Shown piece after piece: positions 16,552 to 43,183 of a stretch of DNA of 64,000 nt. The DNA is from Penicillus capitatus (taxonomy: Eukaryota; Plantae; Chlorophyta): the NCBI GenBank assembly GCA_965649825.1, contig OZ287710.1, positions 186,001 to 250,000 on the forward strand, in the 5' to 3' direction. The position numbers and the translations under genes were made by a program. The notes under the pieces are model-generated. The model was not told the origin of the DNA. It saw nothing but the letters and a program-made list of their open reading frames with translations, and made no database searches. Within the stretch, counting starts at the first letter, position 1, and each line of letters opens with the position of its first letter.

Positions 16552-18237
16552 TCAAATCAATTTCATGACGTCCCGCGCCGCTTTGATGGTGGCCTGAATG
16601 TCGTCATCTGTATGGGCCAGTGATGTAAATCCGGCCTCGTATTGACTGGGTGCCAAATAGATGCCGCGCTCCAGCATTCCTCGATGCCAACGGGCGAATT
16701 TCTCGGTGTCTGCCTGGGCAGAGGCATCTTGGAAACAGGTGATGGGTCCCTTGGCAAAGAAGAAACCGAACATGGCACCCACACATCCACCTGTCACATC
16801 ATGTCCTGCTGCTTTGCCGGCTTCAAGGATTCCGTCAAGAAGTGTCTGCGTCGTGCGGGTCAGTTGTTCATAAACGCCATCTCCATTCAGGATCTCTAAC
16901 GTCTTGATTCCAGCTACCATAGCTAATGGATTGCCAGATAGTGTTCCGGCCTGAAAGAGTGACCTCTCAATGAAGAGCAGTTGCTGAGAGAGTGTGTACT
17001 TGGTACATGGGACCTGCCGGAGACACAAGCTCCATGATCTCTCTTCGTCCTCCGTAGGCCCCGACGGGTAAACCTCCTCCAATCACTTTCCCCATGGTTG
17101 TGAGATCTGGAGTGACGTTGTAGTACTCCTGTGCACCTCCCTAGCATCTCACTTCTGTCTTATTCTTTTTGAAGTGCGTAGAGAAGGTGCTGGAGACCTT
17201 GGCCACTCGGAAACCTGTCATGACTTCGTCAAAGCAGAGCAACGCGCCTTCTTCTGTGCACAGTTTACGCAATCCCTGAGCCACACACTCGTAGGAATAC
17301 TCTCACACAAGCGACAGCATGTGGTGCACTTTGAGGAATTCGATGGACGGAGCAATGAATCCTGAATTCCCGACGACCGGTTCCAAGATTACACCGGCCA
17401 CCTCATCTTTATTCGCCTCGAATACAGCTCTCACAGAATCCAGATCATTAAACGTAGCGGTCAGTGTATTCTGCGTTGCTCCGGGAGGAACGCCTGGCGA
17501 ATCTGGCAGCCCCAATGTGGCAACACCCGATCCCGCCTGAACCAGAAACGAATCGGCATGTCCATGATAACACCCGACAAATTTGATGAGCTTGTTTCGT
17601 TGCGTAAAGGCACGCATCAATCTCAGAACGGAGAGACACGCCTCCGTTCCAGAATTGACCATCCGCACCATCTCCACCGAAGGAATGCGTTCGATGACCA
17701 TCTCGGCTAATGTGTTCTGTCATCCCACGGGGTCAGTACGGAAGGAGAGATGGCGATGGGACCTCGTGGATACAGGGTGCGCCAAAACTGGTCCCTTTTT
17801 CGATCTGCTCCTTCAGAGCGGCATTTACTTCGGGATGGGCATGACCCACAATGGCAGGACCCCATGTGCCCACGTAGTCAATAAAGGCATTGCCGTCGAC
17901 ATCGTACACGTGACTGCCATTCACTCGGTCGAAGACAATCGGCTCACCACCGACCGATTTGAAAGCACGGACGGGCGAATTCACGCCGCCCGGCATCAGA
18001 TCCTTCGCTCGAGAAAAGACCTGCAGGCGTGGGTGAGCGAAGGGAGAGCATTCAGCCACACCATGCCTCTTCTGATTTCTCGGTTTTGAGCGTCGTCTGC
18101 TGTGAACTGGCATGTAGACGCATTGGCCGTGACACTGCCGTGCGTCTCCTTGCCGAAAAGATATCGCTGGTCGTTTGCCGACAGCTATGGATCTTCATTT
18201 CGCACAACTTCGATACAACAGGATCCACAGTGCGCAT
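16552..18237 (-). CDS. GSA: Glutamate-1-semialdehyde 2,1-aminomutase, chloroplast (HemL)
   Basis: [39 protein letters not shown]-site [29 protein letters not shown]; N-terminal transit peptide. Start at 18237 or 18198. Confidence 0.97.
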
Positions 18238-18434: not shown

Positions 18435-21384
18435 CTAAACAATTGGTGGTCGATTTGGAGTAGAACTTGCAGCAACAGGGATATTTGCGTCATTACTTCC
18501 GAATCCGTCGTGCAAGTATGCAACATTTCCTTCTTCCGTCTCTTCTTGTATTTCAGATGTCCCCTCAGCCATGGTCGTCTGTACAACAGCATAAACCGTT
18601 GTTGGTGTATTCGGGGGAGATCCATCTGGTGGTGTGACTGGTACTCTCTTTTGCTGACTTTCTCGGAGTCGAGCAACAATAACCGCAAAAGGATGTCGTT
18701 CTCCTGTGCTAGCATTTTCGAGAAAAGCATGCTGCATGAGCACGGTGGACATGAAAGATTTGTGCCCCAGATCGTTTTGCTGGAGTATAGGAAAGAGATT
18801 CCTATCTAATCGATTCAGACAAGCAATAGTGGTTATCAACACCCAGAAAAGGCGCATAAGGGCGAAGAAAACGCCAAGAACTAAATGAACAGCAGTGTAG
18901 ACAAGCAGAAAGAGAAGAAAACAGAGTTCGTGATAGATGTGATATTTCTGTACGAGAATGCCCTCGGCGATCACCATTTGAGCGAGTGGTCCATTCAGCA
19001 GCCATGTGATGAGGAAAGCAATGAGAAATGCCAGAAAAGGACGCAAGATGACGAACACACGATGTTCAAAAATACTGACGATGAGGGACAGCAAGAGAGA
19101 GACGAATCCACCGAAAAGGACGAGCTGAATGACAGCTGTGCTTACTAAAATGCCAAAAAAGAATACAGAAGCGCCCATGGGATAACGGACGATGAGTTTC
19201 TTCCAGTTCCTCTCCGTCACAATATCTTCAACGCGATGAATGTTTGCCTCGGTTTCATTCTGTGGCTTAATAACGAGGTCCTCTGGCAGGTCCAGATTCT
19301 CAAAGAACCCACTGCGAATCGCGAGGGAGATCCTCTTGTACTGGGCTAGGACAGAGAGCAGTGAGTACATGCCGACAACGATGCCAGCCATAAGACCGAC
19401 CCAAATCGACCATCGTAGATGACGCAGTAGCTGATCGACCACATAGATGCTTCGTCCAATTGCCTGATCGCGGAAGACATCCGTTGGTGTTTTGGTTTCG
19501 TTGAGTGACGCATTCATGCTTCGTTCCAGTCGATTGATCAACAGGAGCGTCATGCAGGAGTTATCCGAGTGAGTTTCTGATGAGCAGCGAAAGTAACGCG
19601 AATCATGGAGAAGTTCCGTTTCAGGCGTCTCCCTTTCTCCAGCTGTCGGTGGGTTCATGTCGGGGTCGGCTGTTTGATTTCCCGGTTGATCGAGTGGCTG
19701 TTGTGTACCGAATGTGGCGGTGATATCTTCGAAGATCGCTGCGTCAAAATCCGCTCCTATACTGGAAGTGTCCACAGAACATGCTGCGTTCGTCAGTTCA
19801 GTTTCATCGCGTGCATTGAAAGCTTGGCCTGCGTTTGATGAAGCCTCTGTGAATCCTGCCAGTCGGAAGACAAAATTGCCAAGCTCGCCGTTGTTTTCGA
19901 TCGTCCAGACGGCGCAGTTGCGTCGTGGTATGTACATTTCGTCGATGAATTTGGAGGTGTAGGAGGCTATACCTACTCCAAAGTACAGCAGAAGGACAAA
20001 GGCGGTGCACATGGCAGCCAGGACCCAAGAGGAATGATGGAACTTGTCGTCTTCGCGAATGCCGGCATAGAGTTCGTCCACACCAGCGCGGAACTTCTCA
20101 CCAAAGTCTCGCCAGTACTGAACAGTACCACGAAAAGACTGTGTCATTTGTTGCATGGTCCGTTCTTTCATGCCAGGGTCCTCTTCGTTTTCTGCAGCAT
20201 TCCGGCTATAATGCATATCTGTTCTCTTAGGTGGATTCCAGATACCCTGCATCACACAGAACATGGCGTCTGGCCTGAACAGAACAGAAAACGGACCCAT
20301 GTCAAATAGGATATCATTCGTTTCCAGGTCTGAAAGACACGAGATTGTTCTATGCTGTCAAATATGTCTAGGAAGGAATCAGAGATGTCTTCGGTGATCG
20401 TCTTTTGGGACGCCACGCCTTCTAGAAGATTGTCCAATAGCCAACGAAGGCCACAGACGATGGCATTTGTTCCGCTCGATGTTTTCTGCAACAGCCAAGT
20501 GAACATTGCCCGAATAGAGCTGGCAATCTGCAGATATGACAGAAAATATCACAAAGGCTTATAAAAAACAAGGCATACGCGCGATCGCATGGTTGGCTGC
20601 GACCCGGGCCCTCCGTTCGAACCTTCAGTGGGCGTCTTTTGAGCATTGGGTGCGAATTCTTTGCGAATGTTGGACCATATTCTCCGTCTCTTTTGCTTTT
20701 TCTCATTTTTTTCCTCATTTTCTATCAGTTTTTTGTAGCTGGTGTTGCATGCCTCCAGGAAAAAGAAATCCATGGCCACTGTTGATAGGAACAGGATGCT
20801 GAACAAAAGGTAATGTGAGAATCCACTCTCATACTTATCGTGCTCGTCGTCCCTGTCGTTATACTTTAGCTGTGATGTGACCATGATAATGACCACCAAG
20901 AAATTGGCGACAACGGCACTGATGAAAGAGAGTGTCAGCCACAGTCGGTGACGGTTTAGCTGCTCTTCATCAAATTTATAGACATTGATGCTTAACAGCA
21001 TGAAGCTGTATGCTCCTATAAAGAGACACAGCAAGAGAAGCACCAGTGCTCGCACAATCTGGCGTCCAGCAGCTGACAGTGAATGCAAAGCGACAGTTTG
21101 TTCCAAGAGGACCTCGTCATCTTTATCCGTCTCTAAGAATCCAACATCAAAGTAAACCGTGGCAATCTGTCGTCCGCTTCTCAGCAAGGGCACAGCACGG
21201 AGGAAGCATTACGCACCGTAAATGCCAGCGTCGTCAGCACAGTGAGTGTGTAGGCGCGCGACTCCCCATCAAGAGAAGCGAGTTTTTGCCAGCCACGTTC
21301 TCGAAGTGTCGGGGCAGTCCTAAGCTGCGAATCCGAGGGCTTGTGGTGCGAGGAAGATGTCGCTTCGCTGTCATTGGTAGGCAT
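18435..21384 (-). CDS. ~900-aa multi-pass membrane protein, STRA6/RBP-receptor-family-like
   Basis: Exons join in frame: LAFT|IATVY, TMRSR|IASSI, YLTW|GIWNP. The C-terminal TM bundle and LNRLDRNLFP...NDLGHKSF...HP are colinear with human STRA6 as I recall it. Confidence 0.7.
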
Positions 21385-21791: not shown

Positions 21792-23502
21792 ATGGGAATG
21801 TGCCACAGCCGATGTTTAAGCGGCACCGATGTGATGACCAGCGCCGGATTAGGTCTTCCCAAAGAGTTTACCGTCATACGGGAATTGGGCTACGGTCAGG
21901 AAGGGAAGACATATCTTGTACAAGAAAAAACGTCAAAGGGGTAAGCCCATCCATCGTACCCTAGCATCTTAACTCTTACGTTGCGGACATGGCAGAACGA
22001 TGAAATTTGCACTAAAAGCTATTCCGCGAGGCAATTTACTGCACCCAGAATTCGTTCTACGTGGACTCCGAAATCAAAGGTATGGGTCAGAGACGACAGC
22101 TGAACCATCAAGATGATGGAACATCTGTGCTGCAGCTGTCTGTGTTTTGTCCACGTGGTGAAATTTTTGGAAGTGCTGTTGACACCGTCACATCTGATCA
22201 TCAAATTTGAATACGTCGACGGCGGGAACTTGTTCCGTAAGCATCACCTCCAGTCAAAGAACACAACGCAGACATTTGTGTGTGCAGAATATGTATGCCG
22301 ACAACCCAGTGTCGGCAGACATCAATTAATGGATGAGGAACACGCACGCTTCCTCTTTATTCAGATAGTCTACGCGCTGCATCATTGTCATGAACACCGT
22401 GTTGCACATAGAGATATTAAATTCGCAAATATCCTGTGCACAAGATCGAGGAATCCAATCATCAAGGTACGCACACACACACATCTGATGAAACAGAGGC
22501 CATACGGGAGGCATGGTGCTTGGTGTCCGCAGATTTGTGACTTCGGATTATCGAAGGGATGGGTGAATCCTCAGGATGCTATTTCGTTCTCTTCAGTGGG
22601 TTCACTGATGTTTATGTCCCCTGAAGTAGTGAGCGCACGCCACGCTACTGGAAAGAGAAAGCCCTATGATTTGTGTAAATCGGATGTATGGGGACTGGGC
22701 ATCATCCTTTTCACGATGCTCTTTGGCCGCTTCCCCTTTCTGAACTCGGGCTCTGTTGAATCCCGTGTCTCACGAGCCCATTTGCTGACAGGAAGCACAT
22801 CGACATTCTCTTTCCTTCTCAGGAGAATGGAAGTGGCACACCGCTCCGATCCACTAAGATTGACGAATGAGATTAGCCAGTCCGATCTGTCACCTGCCGT
22901 CAAGAAATTGTTATTGTCGATGCTCAATATCGATGAAAAACATGTAAGAAGTTCGATGCTTTGGTCGAGAAGGCAACTCATAGACATGTGTGTTCGTTAG
23001 AGAATCGGACTCGATCAGTTGATTGAGAATCCGTGGGTCAAAATTGGCTTGAGTCGCCAGCGTGCACGTGTGATTGCCAAAGTCCGATGGCCAGAGTATC
23101 TCCCATCCCCTCTCCTCTGTCATATCCATATGTTCTCCGAACAGGGAGCCGTCAGCAAGGAGCACAACCTATACGCCTGATGAAATTATGCCACCCCGAA
23201 GGAGAGATTCCAGGGTAAAAACAGGCATCACGTACATGCACGGTGAACTCATTCGCGGATCGCCGGCCGACAACGAGCTCGAGGAAATCGTGCATCGTGC
23301 GGCGCATCTTGGTGATCCGGATGATGACCTGGTAAGATGGTTGCCGCCTGGTGTCCGGCTCAGACGTAAGATATCAGCTGAAGAAAAAGCAAGTCTGGAA
23401 GCACAAGGCATACGTCTCTGTACCAAATGTCAGGAGGATCCAGAGGACAAGTACCATAACGAGTTTGGGAGTATTCGAATCATGCCACCCCACCACTACT
23501 AG
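21792..23502 (+). CDS. SnRK2-like/CAMK-group Ser/Thr kinase with MGxC lipidation-type N-terminus, multi-exon
   Basis: MGMCHSRC; Gly-loop LGYGQEGKTYLV; FALK; VVKFLEVLLTPSHL; HRDIKFAN; ICDFGLSK; SPEV; SDVWGLG. Introns 21941-21995, 22080-22135, 22237-22287, 22467-22532. Confidence 0.9.
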
Positions 23503-30015: not shown

Positions 30016-30066
30016 CATGTGCGTGTCGTACGTACCACGCACGGCGTATTCGAGACCGCGACGCGG

Positions 30067-33026
30067 ATGTCTCATGTGATGCGTTTGTTGTCGCCGCGTC
30101 ATGTTCGCGTGCTGAGTCCTGCCGTGCCGTCGTCGGCAGCGACGCGTGTCAACCGTTCTCTCTTATCGCTCGGAACGTACTGTCGTTGCGGAAAGCTTTC
30201 GGAAATCGGCCGCGTGCGGCGTTTCGCGTCTTTCCGATACGGCAAACCTGTGTGCGCGCACGTCTCGCGCGGAGTCGTTCCCAACGAGATGGATACGGCA
30301 GAGGTGGTACAGATCGGTGAACTGTCACAGAGCTCGGCGCATTGGGTGACCTGTGACGTTGTGGCATGGAGGAAACAACAGACGGATGCCAAGGGCATAC
30401 ATTATCGCTTCAAACTCCATAGCTCCTACGATGCTGCCTTAGTCGCCACCAAAGATGGCGTGCTCAATGCCGAAACATCCATGCCGCTCCATGTGCTCAA
30501 TCGAAAGGAGCAGTTTACACGATTGGCCAAATTTCCTCATCTCTTTGGCAGTACCTTGCTCCAGTTGGATGAACCAGATCTGTTGGATTATCCGAAGATG
30601 CTGAAGTCTCAGTTGTGGATGTCATGTGAGACGCCGGAAGGGAAGGTGGTTGATGTGACAGGTGTTCAACTGCCTGGCGTCGTGGATGAGGTCTTTACCT
30701 TCGATGGACCGCTTGGATACCAGTGCCATTCTGGCAATATCGACTGTGTAAGGATCTGGGCACCAACGGCACATTCTGTCGATGTTCTCTGCTGGGAGAC
30801 GACACAAAATGAAGACCCTGAGGTATTGTCCATGCAACCGGCAGCAGGAGGTGTATGGGAAGTGCCGATCCCAGCTGAATGGCTCTGGAGGTTCTACAAG
30901 TTTCGATTACATGTGTACTGTCCTTGGACTTTGAAGATGGAGACCTTTGAAGTGACAGATCCCTACTCTAGAGGGCTCTCCGCCAATGGAGAACGCAGTC
31001 AATTTGTCGATTTGGATCATTCGCTGACGAAGCCTGAGAACTGGGACGCGCATGAGATTCCAGATCTAGACAGTTTCTCAGATATCAGCGTTTACGAGCT
31101 CCATGTGCGCGATTTCAGCGTCACAGATGATACAGTCCCATCAAAATTGCAAGGAAAATTCAGCGCTTTTAATCCCGGCCTCATACAAGCGCAAACCGGC
31201 TCGGTGTCGAATGGACTGGATCATTTGATGAAGCTCAGGTCGTCAGGAATGACACATATACATCTTCTACCCGTGTATGACTTCGCTTCTGTCCCTGAGC
31301 GTGCTGAAGAACGGTTGGATGTCACACTCGATCTCACACATTTTAGCCCAGCGTCCGAAGAACAACAGAAGGCAGTCGTTGACATTGCAGATCGGGATGG
31401 ATTCAATTGGGGATATGATCCCGTGCACTTTGGTGTCCCAGACGGGAGCTATGCCACCGATCCAGACGGCATCGCACGGCTGAAAGAGTTCAGGGAAATG
31501 GTCATGGGGCTGCATCAAATGGGCTATCGCGTTGTCCTGGATGTCGTTTACAATCACACCTTTGAAGGACAATCCGAACGCTACTCCGTCTTCGACAAAG
31601 CTGTTCCTGGATACTATCACAGGTAGTGACTCCACACTGGCCTCGCTTTGTGTGACGATGCTGTGCCAGACGCGAAGAGAACGGGGCGCTTTGCACGAGT
31701 GGTTGTGGAGCTAATACAGCATCAGAGCATGTGATGTTTGAGAAGTTTGTCGTGGATGATATCATTCACTGGGCCACGCATTACAAGATCGATGGTTTTC
31801 GTTTTGATATCATGGGACATCTGATGCTCTCCACAATGGAAAAGATTCGCACCGCGCTGGATGACCTGACAGTCGAATCCGATGGAGTGGACGGAAAGAA
31901 GATTTACCTCTATGGTGAAGGATGGGACTTTGGAGAAATGGCGAACAATCAACGAGGCCGCAATGCCCAGCAGTTGAATCTTGGTGGCACCGGGATAGGA
32001 ACGTTTAACGATCGTTTCAGAGACAGTGCCATGGGAGGGAGTCCTTTCGGTCCACCTCGATTTCAAGGGTTCATCACAGGACTCGCTCTACAACCCAATC
32101 CAGCACTCGACCAAGGATCTCCGCGTGCACAGATGCGCCAACTCATGGATCTTTCTGATCTTCTCAGAGCCACAATGGCTGGGAATTTGGTGGACTATGA
32201 AGTCTGTTCTGCTAATGGTGAATGGACACAGGGCAAGAAATTCAAATTCCATGGCCGTATTGGCGCATACAGTACCTTGCCTTACGAAAACGTGGTGTTC
32301 TGTGGATGCCATGACAATGAGACGCTTTTTGATCACGCCATCCTCAAAGCAGCTCCAGATGTGGACATCGATCAGAGGTCCAGAATGTGCGAGATGGCAT
32401 TGGCACTCGTTCTGCTGTCACAGGGAGTCGCTTTCATTCATGCTGGAGATGACATGCTTCGCAGCAAGAGCCTCGACAGAGACAGTTATAATTCCGGCGA
32501 TTGGTTTAACAAGATCGATTGGACTATGCAGTCGAACAACTTCGGCGTGGGTTTGCCTCCTGCCACCAAGAACGCGACATGGTGGTCGATCTACAAGCCA
32601 TTGCTGGCGGATCCAGGTCTCCGACCACATCCAGCTCTGATTCAGCGTTGTGCACAGCATGTTCAGAGTTATCTCAGGATTCGATATTCCTCCCCTCTGT
32701 TCCGTATCGACTGTCCAGATTTTATCCGGAAACAGTTGGTCTTCTACAACGCTGGGCAAAGACAGGTACCAGGGGTATTGGTGATGGAGCTGAACAGCTC
32801 TTACAGTTTGGGAGATGAGGGTGTCTATGATCCGCAGTTCAAGAGATTGGTGGCGATTTTCAATGCCCGTCCAGATACAGCAACGATCAAGTTTCCCACG
32901 AGCGGACTGGAATTGCACCCAGAGCTTTGCCACTCCGGTGATTATATTTACTCGGAAGTGGAAATCGGTCAAGATGAAGTTAAAGTACCCAGGCGGACAT
33001 CAGTTGTCCTGGTCGAAGAGCGTTGA
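30067..33026 (+). CDS. PUL1: Chloroplast pullulanase/limit dextrinase (GH13), 2 exons
   Basis: FNWGYDP, DVVYNHT, catalytic DGFRFDIMGH (Asp), YGEGWDFGE (Glu), CHDNETLFD (Asp); Arg/Ser-rich transit peptide; intron from 31624. Confidence 0.96.
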
Positions 33027-37386: not shown

Positions 37387-40300
37387 ATGCGGACAGAATC
37401 GGGATGTCGGCTGACACGAGAGGAGATATCAGATCTGCTGGATGAAGAAACCAGGACATGGTTGGTCGACTCGAGAACACTGGCAGATGTGTCGGATGAC
37501 CTCGGTGTCGTTGTCAACTGCACACAGAAGAATGACATCATTCTTCTAAGCGTCGAAGACGAGATAAGAGCAGCAGCTCGAATCGTCGTGCCTTGGAACC
37601 TCACTCTGAGCTCAAATGTCACATCAACGAGATCCGCCAATGGCATTTTTCCAAAAGCAGACCGAAAAGTTCGGTTCAGATGTCCACCAAAAGACGGAAT
37701 CTTTCACATCAGGTAAGAGCAATGGGAGCACGCATTTTGTCCGTAACGTGACTGACCGTTAAATGTTTGCAGGTCGCATGGTGTGCTCCTCGCCAATCTG
37801 GTCTTTCGAGGATGTTCGTTGGACACGGCAGACGTGTCCATCATCCAGGTTGATGACTGTATTCCAGACAGTTCTTTGGCGAAGATCAGGTTGCATCATA
37901 TGGCATTCAGACAGAACGCGTTCAACGGATCCAGTGGCCTCTCCGTTTCCCACGCATCGTGTTCCTCTGTGGAAATGGTCGACGTTGTATTCGCAAATAA
38001 CACCTGTGGCGATCAGTGCTTTGCGAAACTGGCACAAGAAAATGATCTGAGAGATCTGAGGCTCCGGAGAAACAAAAGATTGTCTGAAGAAAGCACAGCG
38101 TCCTCGCTGATGACATCTCCAAAGGGATCCTCCACGTCGGTCAGCAATTTGATCGCGGGCTTGAATGAACTCTCTGTTATGCGCATCGTGGAAGGAAGCC
38201 TCGAAATGAGGAATGCCGAGATTGAAACCACAAGCGAGTCCGCTCTCTTACTGGATCACGCACAAGGAGTCGTCATCGCCAACAGCTCGTTCCGTAAAAA
38301 CTCGGCCAGACTCTTTGGAGCTGCGATCTTGTCCAACACTACTGAGAGCCTGTCAATATCCAACTGCAGCTTCACGTCGAACATTGCAGAGAACGGAGGC
38401 GCCATCGCCTCTTTCTACAGCAATCTGTCGATCGACGGCTCCTCTTTCCGAGATAATGTCGCCACAGTGGATGCCGGTTCCCTCCTCGTCTCCAATGGAA
38501 CACTGGAGCTACTCTCCTCCATTTTCCAGAACAACACAGCTTTAGTCAATGGAGGTGCCATCTTCCTCACAACCAGCATCTCATCGAGGTTGTCAGCCGT
38601 GCAATGTCACAACAACACAGCCCGTAATGGTGGCTGCCTGAAGACGTCTGCATCCAGAGATCTCGTTGTCCGTAAGTCCGTGCTGTCGAATAACAGTGCA
38701 GATAACGGAGGTGGCATTTACTACGAAGAAGTCTCGGAGAGCAAGATCGTGAACACAGTTTTCGAAGAGAATGTTGCACGCAGTGCAGGTGGAGGAGTGT
38801 TTCTCGTTGCATCTCCTCAGATGGAACTTCATAACTGCACTCTGAAGAACAACACCGCAACGACGGGTGGAGGCTTCGACTGTTGGGCCTCGGAACGTTT
38901 GGTTGTCCGCCGTTGTACACTCTCTGACAACAGAGTATCCTACAATGGAGGCGGGGCAAGGATTCTGGACAACAGCGGCGTTCGCCTAAAGGATGTTGTC
39001 TGGTTAGCGAACAAAGCCCAAGACGTAGGGGGAGGATTACTTGTCGAGAACTCCAGCTTCGAGTCTCAAAGCTGCCGCTATCTGGCAAACTCGGCCATCC
39101 ACGGAGCTGGTCTGGGTATTGCCGATGGAACGGCAGATGTGGATGGAGATACCTTCATTAGGAACGTGGCCAGAGAAGGTGGAGGAGGTCTGACAACAGT
39201 GCAGTCCATCACCACATTGAATAACTGTGTCACATCACAGAATGTCGCCAGTTATGGCGGCGGATTGCATGTACTGCTCAGTACTGCCACGATTCGTAAT
39301 ATGACCTCCACAGAGAACAGGGCCCAGCGAGATGTTGGAGGAGGATTAGCTTGCCATCAAAGCAAAGCCACGATCTTAGACTCGTCATTTTTGTCCAACA
39401 TTGCCGGTGCTGGAGGCGGCATGAATTTAAGAGCCTGCAACGCGACGGCTCGTAATCTAACTATTCGGAACAACGATGGAGGTCAATCAGGAGGAGGAAT
39501 CAGCTGTTCAGGAAAAACTCGGTTCAACCTGTCCGATTCAGTTTTGCAATCAAACACTGCCAGTGACAGTGGGGGCATTTCTGTTCTTGGCGAGACATCG
39601 GCGCGGTTATCGACTTGCATGATTCAGTCTAACAGTGCTGCAGATGGTGGAGCAATGGGGGTTTACAAAAACAGCACAACTGTTCTCGAGAATTCGATGG
39701 TATCGTCCAATCGTGCTGCGAGAATCGGAGGTGCCGTTCGCCTCCATGAAGGAGAACTGATTATTCATGGCGGATCAGTCGCAAACAATGAAGCGGCAGA
39801 GAAAGGCGGCTTTCTATATGGCACTGCATCCAGTATCTTCTCAGCAACAAATAGCTCTCTCCGCGACAACAGAGCTGGCACTGGAGGCTGTCTGTACATT
39901 CAAAGACAGTCACGAATGTCCTTTCATAACAGTGTCGTCAAGAACAATGAAGCAACGGAAGACGGAGGAGCTGCTTTCTTTGAGGATTCGGAGATGATTG
40001 CAAATGCCAGTATTTTTCGAGGAAACAAGGGCATTGTTGGAGGATCCGTTTCGATGAAGAATTCTAGTCTGCAACTGACAAAGTCCGATTTTGCAGATAA
40101 CAAGGCGACACTTGCTGGAGGATCGATAGCAGCGAAGACAAACAACTCGTTGATCATGTTGGACACATCCTTTTCAAACGACAAAGCAGAGAGTGGCGGG
40201 AGTATTTGGCTCTCTGGATCCAATCTCACGGCTGATGGACTCAGGATGACTGGATGCACAGCCAATGAAACGGGTGGAGGCATCCTGGCGAATGCTTCTT

Positions 40301-43183
40301 CCATCTTTCTGTGCTCCGGGTGCAATTTCAAGAAGAATGGCGCAGAAGAACACGGAGGAGCAATTGCTTTTGATTCCTCCGAGCCCCAGTCTTTGGCTCT
40401 GCAACTGAACAACTGTACCTTTGATAAAAACAGTGCCAGTTATGGAGGTGCGGCTCTGGTCTGACAAAGAGCAATTCTCGATGTTGTTGTTATAGGTGCG
40501 GTGCATGTTTCTACGCAACGCCAACCACAAGGGTGTACGCAATCGGATGCCTCTTGCACCTTTGTGGCGTCAACAGGCAACAGCTTCACAGAAAACCGAG
40601 CAAAGACAGCCGGAGGTGCTGTTTTTACAAGGGATCCCAACGTGCTTCGCTATTCTTGCTCGCCTAAGGACACAGCAGTCCCTCCAAAAGTGTACACAAC
40701 AGAGAGACTTGAGAAATTGGATTCGCTGGAATCTGCACAGGATACATGTCCAGAATGGCATGCAAACCAGGCTGATCTATACGGTCCAGACATTGCCTCT
40801 TATGCCAGATCCGTTAGGGGATTTGCCATCGGCGCTGGTCAGACCAATCGTGAAAGACCCATCATAAACAACGAGCTTGTTGCCAGACATCACCGCAGTG
40901 GCGACCCGCTTCCAGTGCTCCTTGTCGAAGTTCTGGACCAGTATGGACAAAGTCCTGCTCTCGGGGAAGGCTATGCATTTGTGCAGACGACCATGTATTC
41001 TCCAAACGATCTCTTTTCTGGAGAGGTGAACATGCCAGTGAACGAGACACGGAAGACCTTTCCGCCAATCGCGGGATTGCAACGTCCAGGTCGATACGAG
41101 CTCCGCATCGACTTCAGTGAATCTGGGCTGGAGTCACTCACCGTCGAGGTCGATGTTCGAGACTGTCAGCTTGGAGAATTTTCCCAAGAAGATGGGATGC
41201 TTTGTGTTCTCTGCAGTGGATCGCAGTACAACTTCGATCCAGATTCATCCACGTGTCGGTCTTGTCCAGAGAACGGGAACTGTACCACGCATGTCATCCA
41301 CCCAAACAGCGGCTACTGGCATCGAACCCCCTGTTCAGAACATGTGCAGCGATGTGTTTCGCGCGATGCGTGTGATTTCGGTGACCGAGAAGATGACTTG
41401 AACACATTGACGCGTGAAATGCACACCTGCAAGATTAGCGAGACGTTGGATAGGGACTATTCTGAAGCTCAGTGCAAAAAGGTGATCTTCTTTTAAACAC
41501 ATTAAATGCCAAGACTGTTGCTTCAGGGATATACGGGTTTGTTATGTGGTGCCTGTGATGCTGGGTATGGACGTTCTTGGTCGTTTGAATGCGTTGAATG
41601 CTACCATGGTTTAGCAACGACGATGCTTCTTGTGGCTTCTCTCTTTATGTTGTTTCTTCTCTCCAGCTTCACCATTCGAAGCAACCTGAATACGACGAAC
41701 TCGGACAGCAGACATGGCTCAACGAATCGAATCAGTCGAAGAAATCGACGCCTCGTCCCTTCGAAGAAAAGAATATCGAAAGACGTTCCAGGAGACTTCG
41801 AAATGATGGAGACGATGGATAGAGAGGACGTGCCAGAAGTTGCCCGTCCAGATCCGCCTGCATCTGCATCGAAGTCTGATCCGACCGTTGCAAAACAGAC
41901 GGTCGTCGAGATATTCAAGGCAAACCCTTTCTCTTGCATACCGTCCATTGCCAGACCTGTGCTGTGTAATAGATCAGCATCAATTTCCTTCAGGTCATCG
42001 CTGCGGCTGCAATCATCAATGTGAACTGGACGAGTTGGATGCGTTCTTTGCTCTTCACAGCAGGTGCTTTCGTGTCTCCTGAGTTTGTCGTGTTGACTGT
42101 ATCGTGTTGGCAGACTTTCTGAGTGGAGCTGCTGATGCAGGACTCGCAGTCTCTGTTGATTGCCTGTTTGATGCGCAGAACGATCCTCACAGATCCGTCA
42201 TGAGGTCTGTCATTCACATTCTCATTCCTTTGGGCGTGTTGGTCTGCTATATTATCTTTTGGATCTTCTTGACTCGGAAGTACGACGAGAACACATGGTA
42301 TTTTGCAAAAAGGCTGCTGCTCAGTTTCTTGGCCGTTGTTTACCTGACTTACGTATCCATCACCAAGACAGCTGTCAACTCGCTTCACTGTATTAAAGTC
42401 TACGATGCCACAGATTTGGACAATGATCATACGGATGCGTATTGGGCACTGGATACTTCCCTGAAATGTTATGAGGGTTCTCATGCTGTTCTTGCTTTGA
42501 CTGTCGGCTGGCCAGTCCTCATCATCTTTTCTTTCGGGCTACCGATCACTTTGGCATACGTCCTGATCAGGCAACGATCTCAGGAACCTGGTCAGAATCC
42601 ATGGCTCGTCGATGCCACTGGGTTCCTGTACCGTGCTTATAAGGAGCGCTTTATTTTCTGGGAATCTATTATCATGCTTAGAAAAGCAATCCTCACCGTC
42701 GTCGTTGCGTTTTCTTATCCGTTAGGAACCAACATACAAGGAATCTTGGCTATTTCTATTCTGGCATTCGCTATCTATATCCATGTTACCTGTCGGCCCT
42801 TTGATAAGCCCTTTGGCTTCTTGAATGCCTTTGAGTCAGCATCTTTGATCGTTTCGCAGCTGACCTTTACCTCTGGCTTGTTCTTTAATGATCATCGTAC
42901 CTCTGGTGCTGTCAAGATTCTCCTCACACTTTTGTTGTCTATGGCAATCTGCGGACTCTTTCTTGCTTTGTTCTATGCTTTCATTAAATTCGCAGATATC
43001 TATCTGAAAGCTGTCCTTGAAGACGAAGGAATGGAAAATGTTCAAGATTGGGGTACCCTCCGTGTTTTCAGGGTTTTTCTTTTGACGCGTATGATGCAGT
43101 GCTTTCGATGCTTGTATCGCGAACGGAAGGACAAGCCTTCGAATCAGCCGCATCATCCACCAGGTGCTTCTACCAGTGTGTGA
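37387..43183 (+). CDS. Large receptor-like protein: GGA(I/V)/FxxN parallel beta-helix (Pmp-like) repeats, Cys-rich region, about 7 TM C-terminus; 5' end uncertain
   Basis: 893-codon exon of NxAxxGG(A/G) repeats; CPENGNC..GYW and C..GYTGLLCGACDAGYG; hydrophobic helices in 41600-43000; GC-AG intron 41920-41972 gives EIFK|ISINFLQV. Confidence 0.85.

Follow-up and report, generated by a model that had tools for sequence, protein, structure and literature searches.

A green-algal family of membrane proteins with a core related to the retinol-uptake receptor STRA6

A 64,000-nucleotide stretch of the Penicillus capitatus genome (contig OZ287710.1, positions 186,001 to 250,000; hereafter called the window, whose own numbering is used throughout) carries a four-exon gene on its reverse strand, at positions 18435-21384, that encodes a membrane protein of 932 amino acids. 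Profile comparisons show that a core of this protein, residues ~601-837, is homologous to the equivalent part of the receptor STRA6. The protein represents a divergent green-algal branch of the STRA6/RBP_receptor superfamily, and we consider it somewhat probable that this polytopic protein is a dimeric facilitator of the movement of a lipophilic ligand. The handling of such a ligand is proposed by analogy with STRA6, and the more specific idea of a retinoid or carotenoid, raised in an earlier note on this DNA, is pure inference.

STRA6 is a receptor for retinol uptake that, together with its paralog STRA6L (RBPR2), is assigned to Pfam family PF14752 (RBP_receptor) and to class 2.A.90 of TCDB; its zebrafish structure is available as PDB entry 5SY1. 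The dimeric protein has a deep lipophilic cleft that gives retinol an energy-independent route into the bilayer (PMC8006376). It has nine transmembrane helices and one intramembrane helix, and it binds calmodulin (PMC8006376, PMC5954442). In the zebrafish protein, residues L323 and N441 are external, and the C terminus binds calmodulin in the cytosol (PMC5954442).

The relation to this family becomes apparent when groups of relatives are used. A word-indexed protein search returned only three close relatives of the 932-residue protein, and these were combined with it into an orthogroup profile (n = 4). An exhaustive search with this profile against 1.84 billion representative proteins identified 92 proteins at E <= 1e-3. 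Pfam scans of the 51 long members of this set gave a single recurrent family, PF14752 (12 of 51 at E <= 0.01). Three members exceed the PF14752 gathering threshold of 25 bits, namely P0042 (25.6 bits; E 5.6e-19 in the family search), P0083 (69.7 bits; E 8.6e-6) and P0088 (80.2 bits; E 1.8e-4). About 20 more match below threshold, always at profile positions ~305-529 and mostly at 380-527 of 605. PF14752 scores of the more distant algal members are 9-23 bits; the 17 closest relatives all fail to reach E 0.01. The match of P0088 to zebrafish STRA6 (5SY1) has an E value of 4.9e-12 and takes in the region of the calmodulin-binding peptide, which makes P0088 a valid anchor for comparison.

Profile-profile alignments were then calculated with hhalign, the targets being metagenomic and protist PF14752-positive proteins, not an animal STRA6 alignment. 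The 17 closest algal sequences, which have no Pfam match, align with four sequences of two PF14752-positive proteins at a probability of 96.8% (E 2.7e-10), and with five PF14752-positive sequences at 98.3% over 193 columns (E 2.5e-14). Against the same five sequences, the four-sequence orthogroup gives 98.2% (E 3.3e-14), and a profile of 38 algal members gives 99.1% (E 2e-18). Reversing the target profile or shuffling its columns reduces the probability to at most 0.2%, with E >= 0.28. In profile searches of the PDB, chain 5sy1_A (STRA6) ranks first both with 51 sequences (E 9.5e-8) and with 17 (E 0.0027). Presenilin and NorA also appeared with the 51-sequence profile (E ~1e-3), but were dismissed as compositional, being matches to poorly aligned hydrophobic columns near the N terminus. 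Profile-profile similarity over the membrane core, above composition controls, thus places the 932-residue protein in the superfamily, whereas it falls outside PF14752 as defined by the curated gathering threshold.

The homologous region covers ~235 residues, from the helix that follows a large external domain to the sequence RLD...DxGH (window positions 18723-19433, reverse strand), and corresponds to Pfam positions ~305-527 of 605 in the intermediate proteins. Identity within the aligned region is ~21%. Landmarks in the alignment include PFLAFLIA, which pairs with zebrafish PFWLTLVL; the ...LGVFFALMRLFWVLITTIACLNRLDRNLF helix, which pairs with ...IGVVLGIWRVVITALFNIVHLGRLDISLL; and NDLGHKSF, which pairs with FDPGYRCY. 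A conserved juxtamembrane signature is at residues 794-824. Arg 794 lies in the last hydrophobic helix and is followed by RLD and, ~13 residues on, by DxG[HYF]; the segment RLD-x(10)-DLGH occupies residues 808-824 (18762-18812, reverse strand). The spacing of these elements is constant across the algal family, and they align with GIWR...GRLD...FDPGY of zebrafish STRA6.

The earlier note had reported a relation to STRA6, and this relation proved real at the profile level, with hhalign probabilities of 98-99%, controls of at most 0.2% and 5SY1 as the top PDB match. Its more detailed statement, that the C-terminal half matches human STRA6 block by block through six blocks, holds in part. Five of the blocks (SVLAQYKRISLAIRSG, FGILVSTAVIQLVLFG, PFLAFLIA, the VLGVFF...NRLDRNLFP helix and NDLGHKSF) lie in the significantly aligned region in the same order, the second and third of the six (SVLAQYKRISLAIRSG and FGILVSTAVIQLVLFG) in an extended hhalign alignment, and the register of the FGILVSTAV helix is shifted by 1-3 residues from that given in the note. 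The first block, FHHSSWVLAAMCTAF, lies outside every significant alignment, and the ordered homology is confined to about a quarter of the protein. Zebrafish STRA6 and the Pfam model served as references for checking the blocks, in place of the human fragments originally quoted.

Several results weigh against assignment of the algal protein to the STRA6 superfamily as a facilitator of lipophilic ligands, and some of them bear on the alternative that the resemblance arose by chance from the composition of hydrophobic helices and one short motif. As a single sequence, the 932-residue protein does not match PF14752 in hmmscan even at E up to 10; nor does phmmer match it to any STRA6 chain in the PDB. 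The four-sequence orthogroup profile does not reach 5SY1 in the PDB either, and retrieves nothing relevant. The N-terminal ~600 residues have no counterpart in the STRA6 family that hhalign detects, and in place of a five-helix domain homologous to transmembrane helices 1-5 of STRA6, only four hydrophobic segments are predicted. The structural models are equivocal. A model of the C-terminal open reading frame (ORF) of 609 amino acids (mean predicted local distance difference test, pLDDT, 77; predicted template modelling score, pTM, 0.69) retrieves 5sy1_A first when compared with the PDB by Foldseek, with a probability of 0.99 over 409 columns against 0.20 for the runner-up, at an E value of only 0.018; its superposition on 5sy1_A is poor (TM-score 0.26-0.27). 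With a model of the full-length Caulerpa ortholog (pLDDT 75, pTM 0.73), Foldseek gave no match to STRA6 and none to another fold that was credible. Finally, the mechanism of STRA6 relies on RBP and intracellular acceptors, and we know of no algal counterparts to these.

A chance resemblance would be consistent with the lack of single-sequence matches in Pfam and the PDB, with the low TM-score and the unmatched Caulerpa model, and with the ~21% identity. Yet the reversed and shuffled profiles fail to reproduce the hhalign result, an unbroken chain of intermediates falls on the same Pfam positions, and a K/R after the first helix, the R in the last helix, RLD and DxG[HYF] are shared in the same order at near-constant spacing. 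STRA6 is also the top PDB match by two independent methods, the sequence profile and Foldseek. We therefore regard coincidence as extremely improbable and largely refuted. The comparison with 5SY1 by Foldseek that the earlier note had suggested was weakly positive, given the first rank at probability 0.99 on one side and the TM-score and the Caulerpa result on the other. Placement of helices in a monomer model is unreliable, since the protein is probably an obligate dimer. As far as these models allow, structure comparison does not appear to contradict the sequence result, and no rival family seems to compete.

The gene that encodes the protein is real and intact, is located in the nuclear genome and consists of four exons. 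Positions 18435-21384 span its stop and start: four co-linear ORF pieces, once spliced, give 932 uninterrupted codons, with the ATG at 21384 and the stop codon at 18437-18435. Reading along the reverse strand, exon 1 (residues 1-56) occupies 21217-21384, exon 2 (residues 57-252) 20579-21166, exon 3 (residues 253-329) 20297-20527, and exon 4 (residues 330-932 and the stop codon) 18435-20246. The last of these equals the 609-residue database ORF P0001 minus its first six residues. The introns are of 50 nt (21167-21216, GTGCGT...ACAG), 51 nt (20528-20578, GTATGC...GCAG) and 50 nt (20247-20296, GTCCGT...GCAG).

This splice model is supported by L001, the orthologous locus in a second ENA assembly, in which every exon is conserved and the large exon is 76% identical. 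In exon 3, changes between the two loci are of the synonymous type in the frame used here as far as ...SYLTW. The donor of intron 3 (GTCCGT/GTACGT) and its acceptor TGATGCAG are kept in L001, where this intron measures 53 nt; the sole indel (3 nt) in the DNA alignment of the two loci falls inside it. A 71-nt version of the third intron, which would give a protein of 925 amino acids, was rejected because its donor is absent from L001, and candidate introns of 22-27 nt were discarded because they broke the frame or were too short to be plausible. Residues 10-865 of the 925-residue model, which differs from the final one only at the intron 3 junction, align end to end with Caulerpa lentillifera g636.t1 (896 amino acids) at 41% identity. 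Because the splice model, conservation in L001 and the independent g636.t1 gene model agree, we conclude that the gene is genuine, and with it the spliced protein of ~900 amino acids of which the earlier note spoke. Its multi-pass nature is likewise borne out: four hydrophobic segments near the N terminus are followed by a helix (403-427), a loop and four long hydrophobic helices. All three introns end in CAG and measure 50-51 nt, and the third has 53 nt in L001; these lengths suggest a genome with uniformly very short introns.

The layout of the protein was derived from hydropathy, AlphaFold models and charge counts. It begins with a bundle of four predicted transmembrane segments (residues 49-193; 20756-21240, reverse strand, across intron 1), also seen as helices in the Caulerpa model, for which hhalign detected no relative outside the algal family. 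A helical linker of ~210 amino acids follows (residues 194-402; 20028-20755, across introns 2 and 3). Because it starts with a strongly basic run, KKLIENEEKNEKKQKRRR, the positive-inside rule predicts that it is cytosolic. The letters SYL in this linker (MISYLTW) match the RBP4-binding SYL of STRA6 and RBPR2 (PMC11050646); we treat the match as chance, since the region that holds it is predicted to be cytosolic and does not belong to the homologous core.

A transmembrane helix (residues 403-427; 19953-20027), which contains the first of the six blocks discussed above and lies outside the significant STRA6 alignment, leads into a domain of 180 amino acids (residues 428-607; 19413-19952). Because this domain is acidic, contains invariant cysteines and has three N-x-S/T sites, it is predicted to be extracytosolic. 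Its four cysteines (Cys440, Cys485, Cys550 and Cys560) are invariant in the orthogroup, and the sequons are at 519, 574 and 578; the middle of the domain is poorly conserved and has low pLDDT. As with the N-terminal bundle, hhalign found no detectable relative of this ectodomain outside the family. The expanded, cysteine-bearing loop that the earlier note placed at the RBP-binding position of STRA6 is thus present, with 180 amino acids and four cysteines directly before the aligned helix.

The homologous core comprises a transmembrane helix (608-631), the sequence YKRISLAIRSG, a predicted cytosolic loop of 54 amino acids, three hydrophobic helices of 36-38 residues (686-806) and the motif NRLDRNLFPILQQNDLGH. 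Beyond these are two short helices and a low-confidence tail of ~70 amino acids (residues 862-932; 18438-18650, reverse strand). All orthogroup members (P0002-P0004, P0113, P0114 and Caulerpa g636.t1) end in [LP]P[IL][IV]-COOH, located at 18438-18449 in the window, and a conserved YL..[DG]F motif lies ~30 residues upstream of this end; paralogs do not have the C-terminal signal. The [LP]P[IL][IV] end could be a hydrophobic sorting or endoplasmic reticulum (ER)-export signal, or a PDZ-type signal.

Several features of the algal protein are shared with STRA6. Both have, in the same order, a transmembrane helix, a cytosolic loop, three long hydrophobic helices, RLD...DxG[HY] and a helix containing HP. 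The big external segment of the algal protein directly precedes the first homologous helix, which is the place of the RBP-binding region in STRA6, and the algal C terminus is also predicted to be cytosolic. The alignments, together with the external position of L323 (PMC5954442), suggest that algal helix 608-631 corresponds to the STRA6 helix directly after the RBP-binding region; similarly, the turn at residues 722-725 may be the counterpart of the external turn at N441. The 38-residue helix before RLD would return to the cytosolic side, as the long intramembrane helix of STRA6 would.

Other features differ. The algal protein is ~260 residues longer than zebrafish STRA6, and its N-terminal domain is unrelated in sequence, with four predicted transmembrane segments instead of five, plus the cytosolic linker. 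Its external segment is a 180-residue domain with four conserved cysteines, in contrast to a short lid and RBP-binding loop in STRA6, and no RBP4 is known in the algal host. The calmodulin-binding (and phosphotyrosine) motif CaMBP2 is also missing: a motif comparison limited to this one binding mode (W.L.YTL..NP, as in the 5K8Q peptide) did not find it in the 932-residue protein or in any member of the algal family, and its tail has nothing CaMBP2-like. The motif was found in P0083, P0088 and P0124 only. Because CaMBP2 is missing, calmodulin binding in the manner of STRA6 is not expected, and the calmodulin analogy of the earlier note should not be carried over to the algal proteins.

Under the facilitator model, the N terminus would be cytosolic and followed by the four transmembrane segments, the cytosolic linker, a transmembrane helix, the ectodomain, a second transmembrane helix and a cytosolic loop. 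Two further transmembrane helices would follow, and then one long helix leading back to the cytosolic side ahead of RLD. The zebrafish STRA6 counterpart of the homologous part would include helices beside the external cleft, with L323 and N441 flanking the aligned segment or falling within it. By homology, the algal protein would probably dimerize as STRA6 does and have a lipophilic cleft that opens to the bilayer. A hydrophobic small molecule, such as a retinoid, an apocarotenoid, a sterol or another lipid, might pass between the extracytosolic side and the membrane without energy input. The ectodomain, whose four conserved cysteines may form two disulfides, would stand in for the RBP-docking loop and present the ligand or its carrier. 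The protein would not be an RBP4 receptor, and calmodulin would play no part of the kind that it has in STRA6.

A homologous core might instead serve another job. The protein could be a receptor, sensor or adhesion-type protein in which the core is a dimeric scaffold or signal relay and no small molecule is moved. Such a role would suit the ectodomain and cytosolic linker, which are large, family-specific and fast-evolving in their middle parts, and the presence of several paralogs in each Bryopsidales species, as is often observed in receptor families. The [LP]P[IL][IV] end and the YL..[DG]F motif resemble partner or sorting motifs, and a signalling role has been reported for animal STRA6 (PMC12953553). 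The distribution of conservation argues otherwise. The most conserved residues of the family (K310, S375/T376, Q380, R471 and R485-L486-D487 in P0001 numbering) are polar or charged and lie within the homologous membrane helices, which better suits a functional membrane site than a passive scaffold; moreover, a Pfam scan of the protein revealed no kinase, SH2-binding or other signalling domain. We consider this alternative to be on the unlikely side.

The same charged residues within membrane helices could point to a hydrophilic or ionic substrate that the protein transports or conducts as a channel, in which case the link to STRA6 would be uninformative about what is moved. STRA6 has been counted among SLC-like proteins (PMC9333335), and the source of one metagenomic PF14752-positive relative names it "MFS family permease". 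This label is an unsupported automatic name, because the protein matches PF14752 only. Neither Pfam nor, at any meaningful score, the PDB gave a match to a transporter family; those members of the fold that have been studied all handle retinol, and the only informative fusion, in the protist protein P0124, is to a lipase. A hydrophilic or ionic substrate therefore appears very unlikely to us, and we continue to favor a facilitator of lipophilic ligands.

P0124 (EukProt transcript GFYU01003274) is a protein of 1354 amino acids with a class-3 lipase domain at 149-272, Big_1/CarboxypepD_reg Ig-like domains at 585-785, and, at 1136-1323, the C-terminal half of RBP_receptor with a CaMBP2-like motif. 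In the literature searched, we found no description of this lipase-Ig-RBP_receptor architecture. The lipase fusion fits a lipid theme among non-animal members. P0083, P0088 and P0117 are encoded by uninterrupted ORFs of 777-2742 amino acids on short metagenomic contigs (JGI, Logan and ENA) and, judged by sequence, appear to be STRA6-like proteins outside annotated animal genomes. A word-indexed search with PF14752-positive proteins returned two proteins. All four of these non-animal proteins share the homologous core with the algal family (hhalign 98-99%), but they pass the Pfam threshold and the algal family does not; neither the lipase and Ig-like domains of P0124 nor the length of P0117 (2742 amino acids) has a parallel in the algal proteins.

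All relatives that bear organism names are from chlorophytes (Caulerpa, Ostreobium, Bryopsis, Acetabularia, Ulva and Tetraselmis). Together with the pullulanase and glutamate-1-semialdehyde aminotransferase-type genes of the window, they lend good support to a green-algal source, probably from the Ulvophyceae/Chlorodendrophyceae part of Chlorophyta. They include Caulerpa lentillifera g636.t1 and g4942.t1, Ostreobium quekettii A0A8S1J6A2 and A0A8S1IXH8, Bryopsis sp. KO-2023 GMH33523, GMH43816, GMH43947 and GMH36341, Ulva mutabilis UM009_0056, Tetraselmis striata TSEL_013795 and an Acetabularia protein. The algal members are labelled hypothetical or uncharacterized and have no precomputed Pfam domain. 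Caulerpa g636.t1, at 41% identity over its full length, shares the architecture of the 932-residue protein and has a C-terminal end of the LPII/PPIV type, whereas chlorophyte paralogs differ from it in ectodomain and tail. Species of Bryopsidales have several paralogs of the family each. A 586-residue ORF (P0010/P0106), 36% identical to the protein in the window, occurs on ENA contigs of 1.8 Mb and 0.65 Mb; the ortholog P0002/P0096 is likewise found on large ENA assembly contigs. P0010/P0106 is probably a paralog in a related species, so the genome from which the window derives may also hold more than one family member.

STRA6 has been called animal-specific (PMC5977736) and described as "produced from scratch", with no homolog among other functionally characterized membrane proteins (PMC3546623). 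In the literature searched, we found no mention of algal or other non-animal relatives. Because the last membrane helices of the algal family are related to STRA6, the membrane core of this receptor would be older and more widespread than the animal-only view implies. Even apart from the algal finding, the superfamily is not confined to animals, since non-animal PF14752 proteins are already in databases; to that extent the gain is limited. What is new in the algal branch is the combination of the known core with different N-terminal, external and tail modules. A family that has only the cleft-side membrane core in common with STRA6 would mark the ancient working unit of the receptor, as distinct from its add-ons, and would offer intron-poor, calmodulin-independent versions for structural and biochemical study of lipophilic-ligand handling. 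In addition, ~90 unannotated proteins gain a superfamily assignment.

A broader hypothesis is that the STRA6 core did not originate in animals but is an old eukaryotic module for moving lipophilic isoprenoids. In the green-algal branch, a built-in, disulfide-bonded ectodomain would then replace the soluble carrier RBP, and retinal, apocarotenoids or a related lipid would be carried across or into a membrane. We regard this as speculative and quite unlikely. If true, the branch would have been kept in marine green algae with eyespots or siphonous bodies, where it might, for example, supply rhodopsins or serve signal exchange between cells or gametes.

Gene density is high across the window. Next to the STRA6-like gene, positions 17303-18113 (reverse strand) carry a spliced aminotransferase class III gene resembling glutamate-1-semialdehyde aminomutase, an enzyme of chlorophyll and haem synthesis, and positions 21792-23000 (forward strand) encode a Ser/Thr protein kinase with the motif HRDIKFANIL. 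The flanks of L001 match those in the window: a kinase gene is found to one side, and genes for an aminotransferase class III, a gamma-tubulin complex protein and an adaptin to the other. Rfam and tRNA scans found no rRNA or tRNA in the window. At 30019-33026 (forward strand), at least two ORFs encode a starch debranching enzyme of the pullulanase type, with N2 and CBM48 domains followed by a pullulanase C-terminal domain; these ORFs presumably form one spliced gene, which suits a starch-storing alga. An ORF of 893 amino acids at 37783-40464 (forward strand) has a match at E 4e-7 to PF02415, the polymorphic membrane protein repeat of Chlamydia, and is followed by two long ORFs without a Pfam match (40501-41496 and 42104-43183, forward strand). 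The region at 42-44 kb of the window has a lower GC content (0.44) and a strong AT skew.

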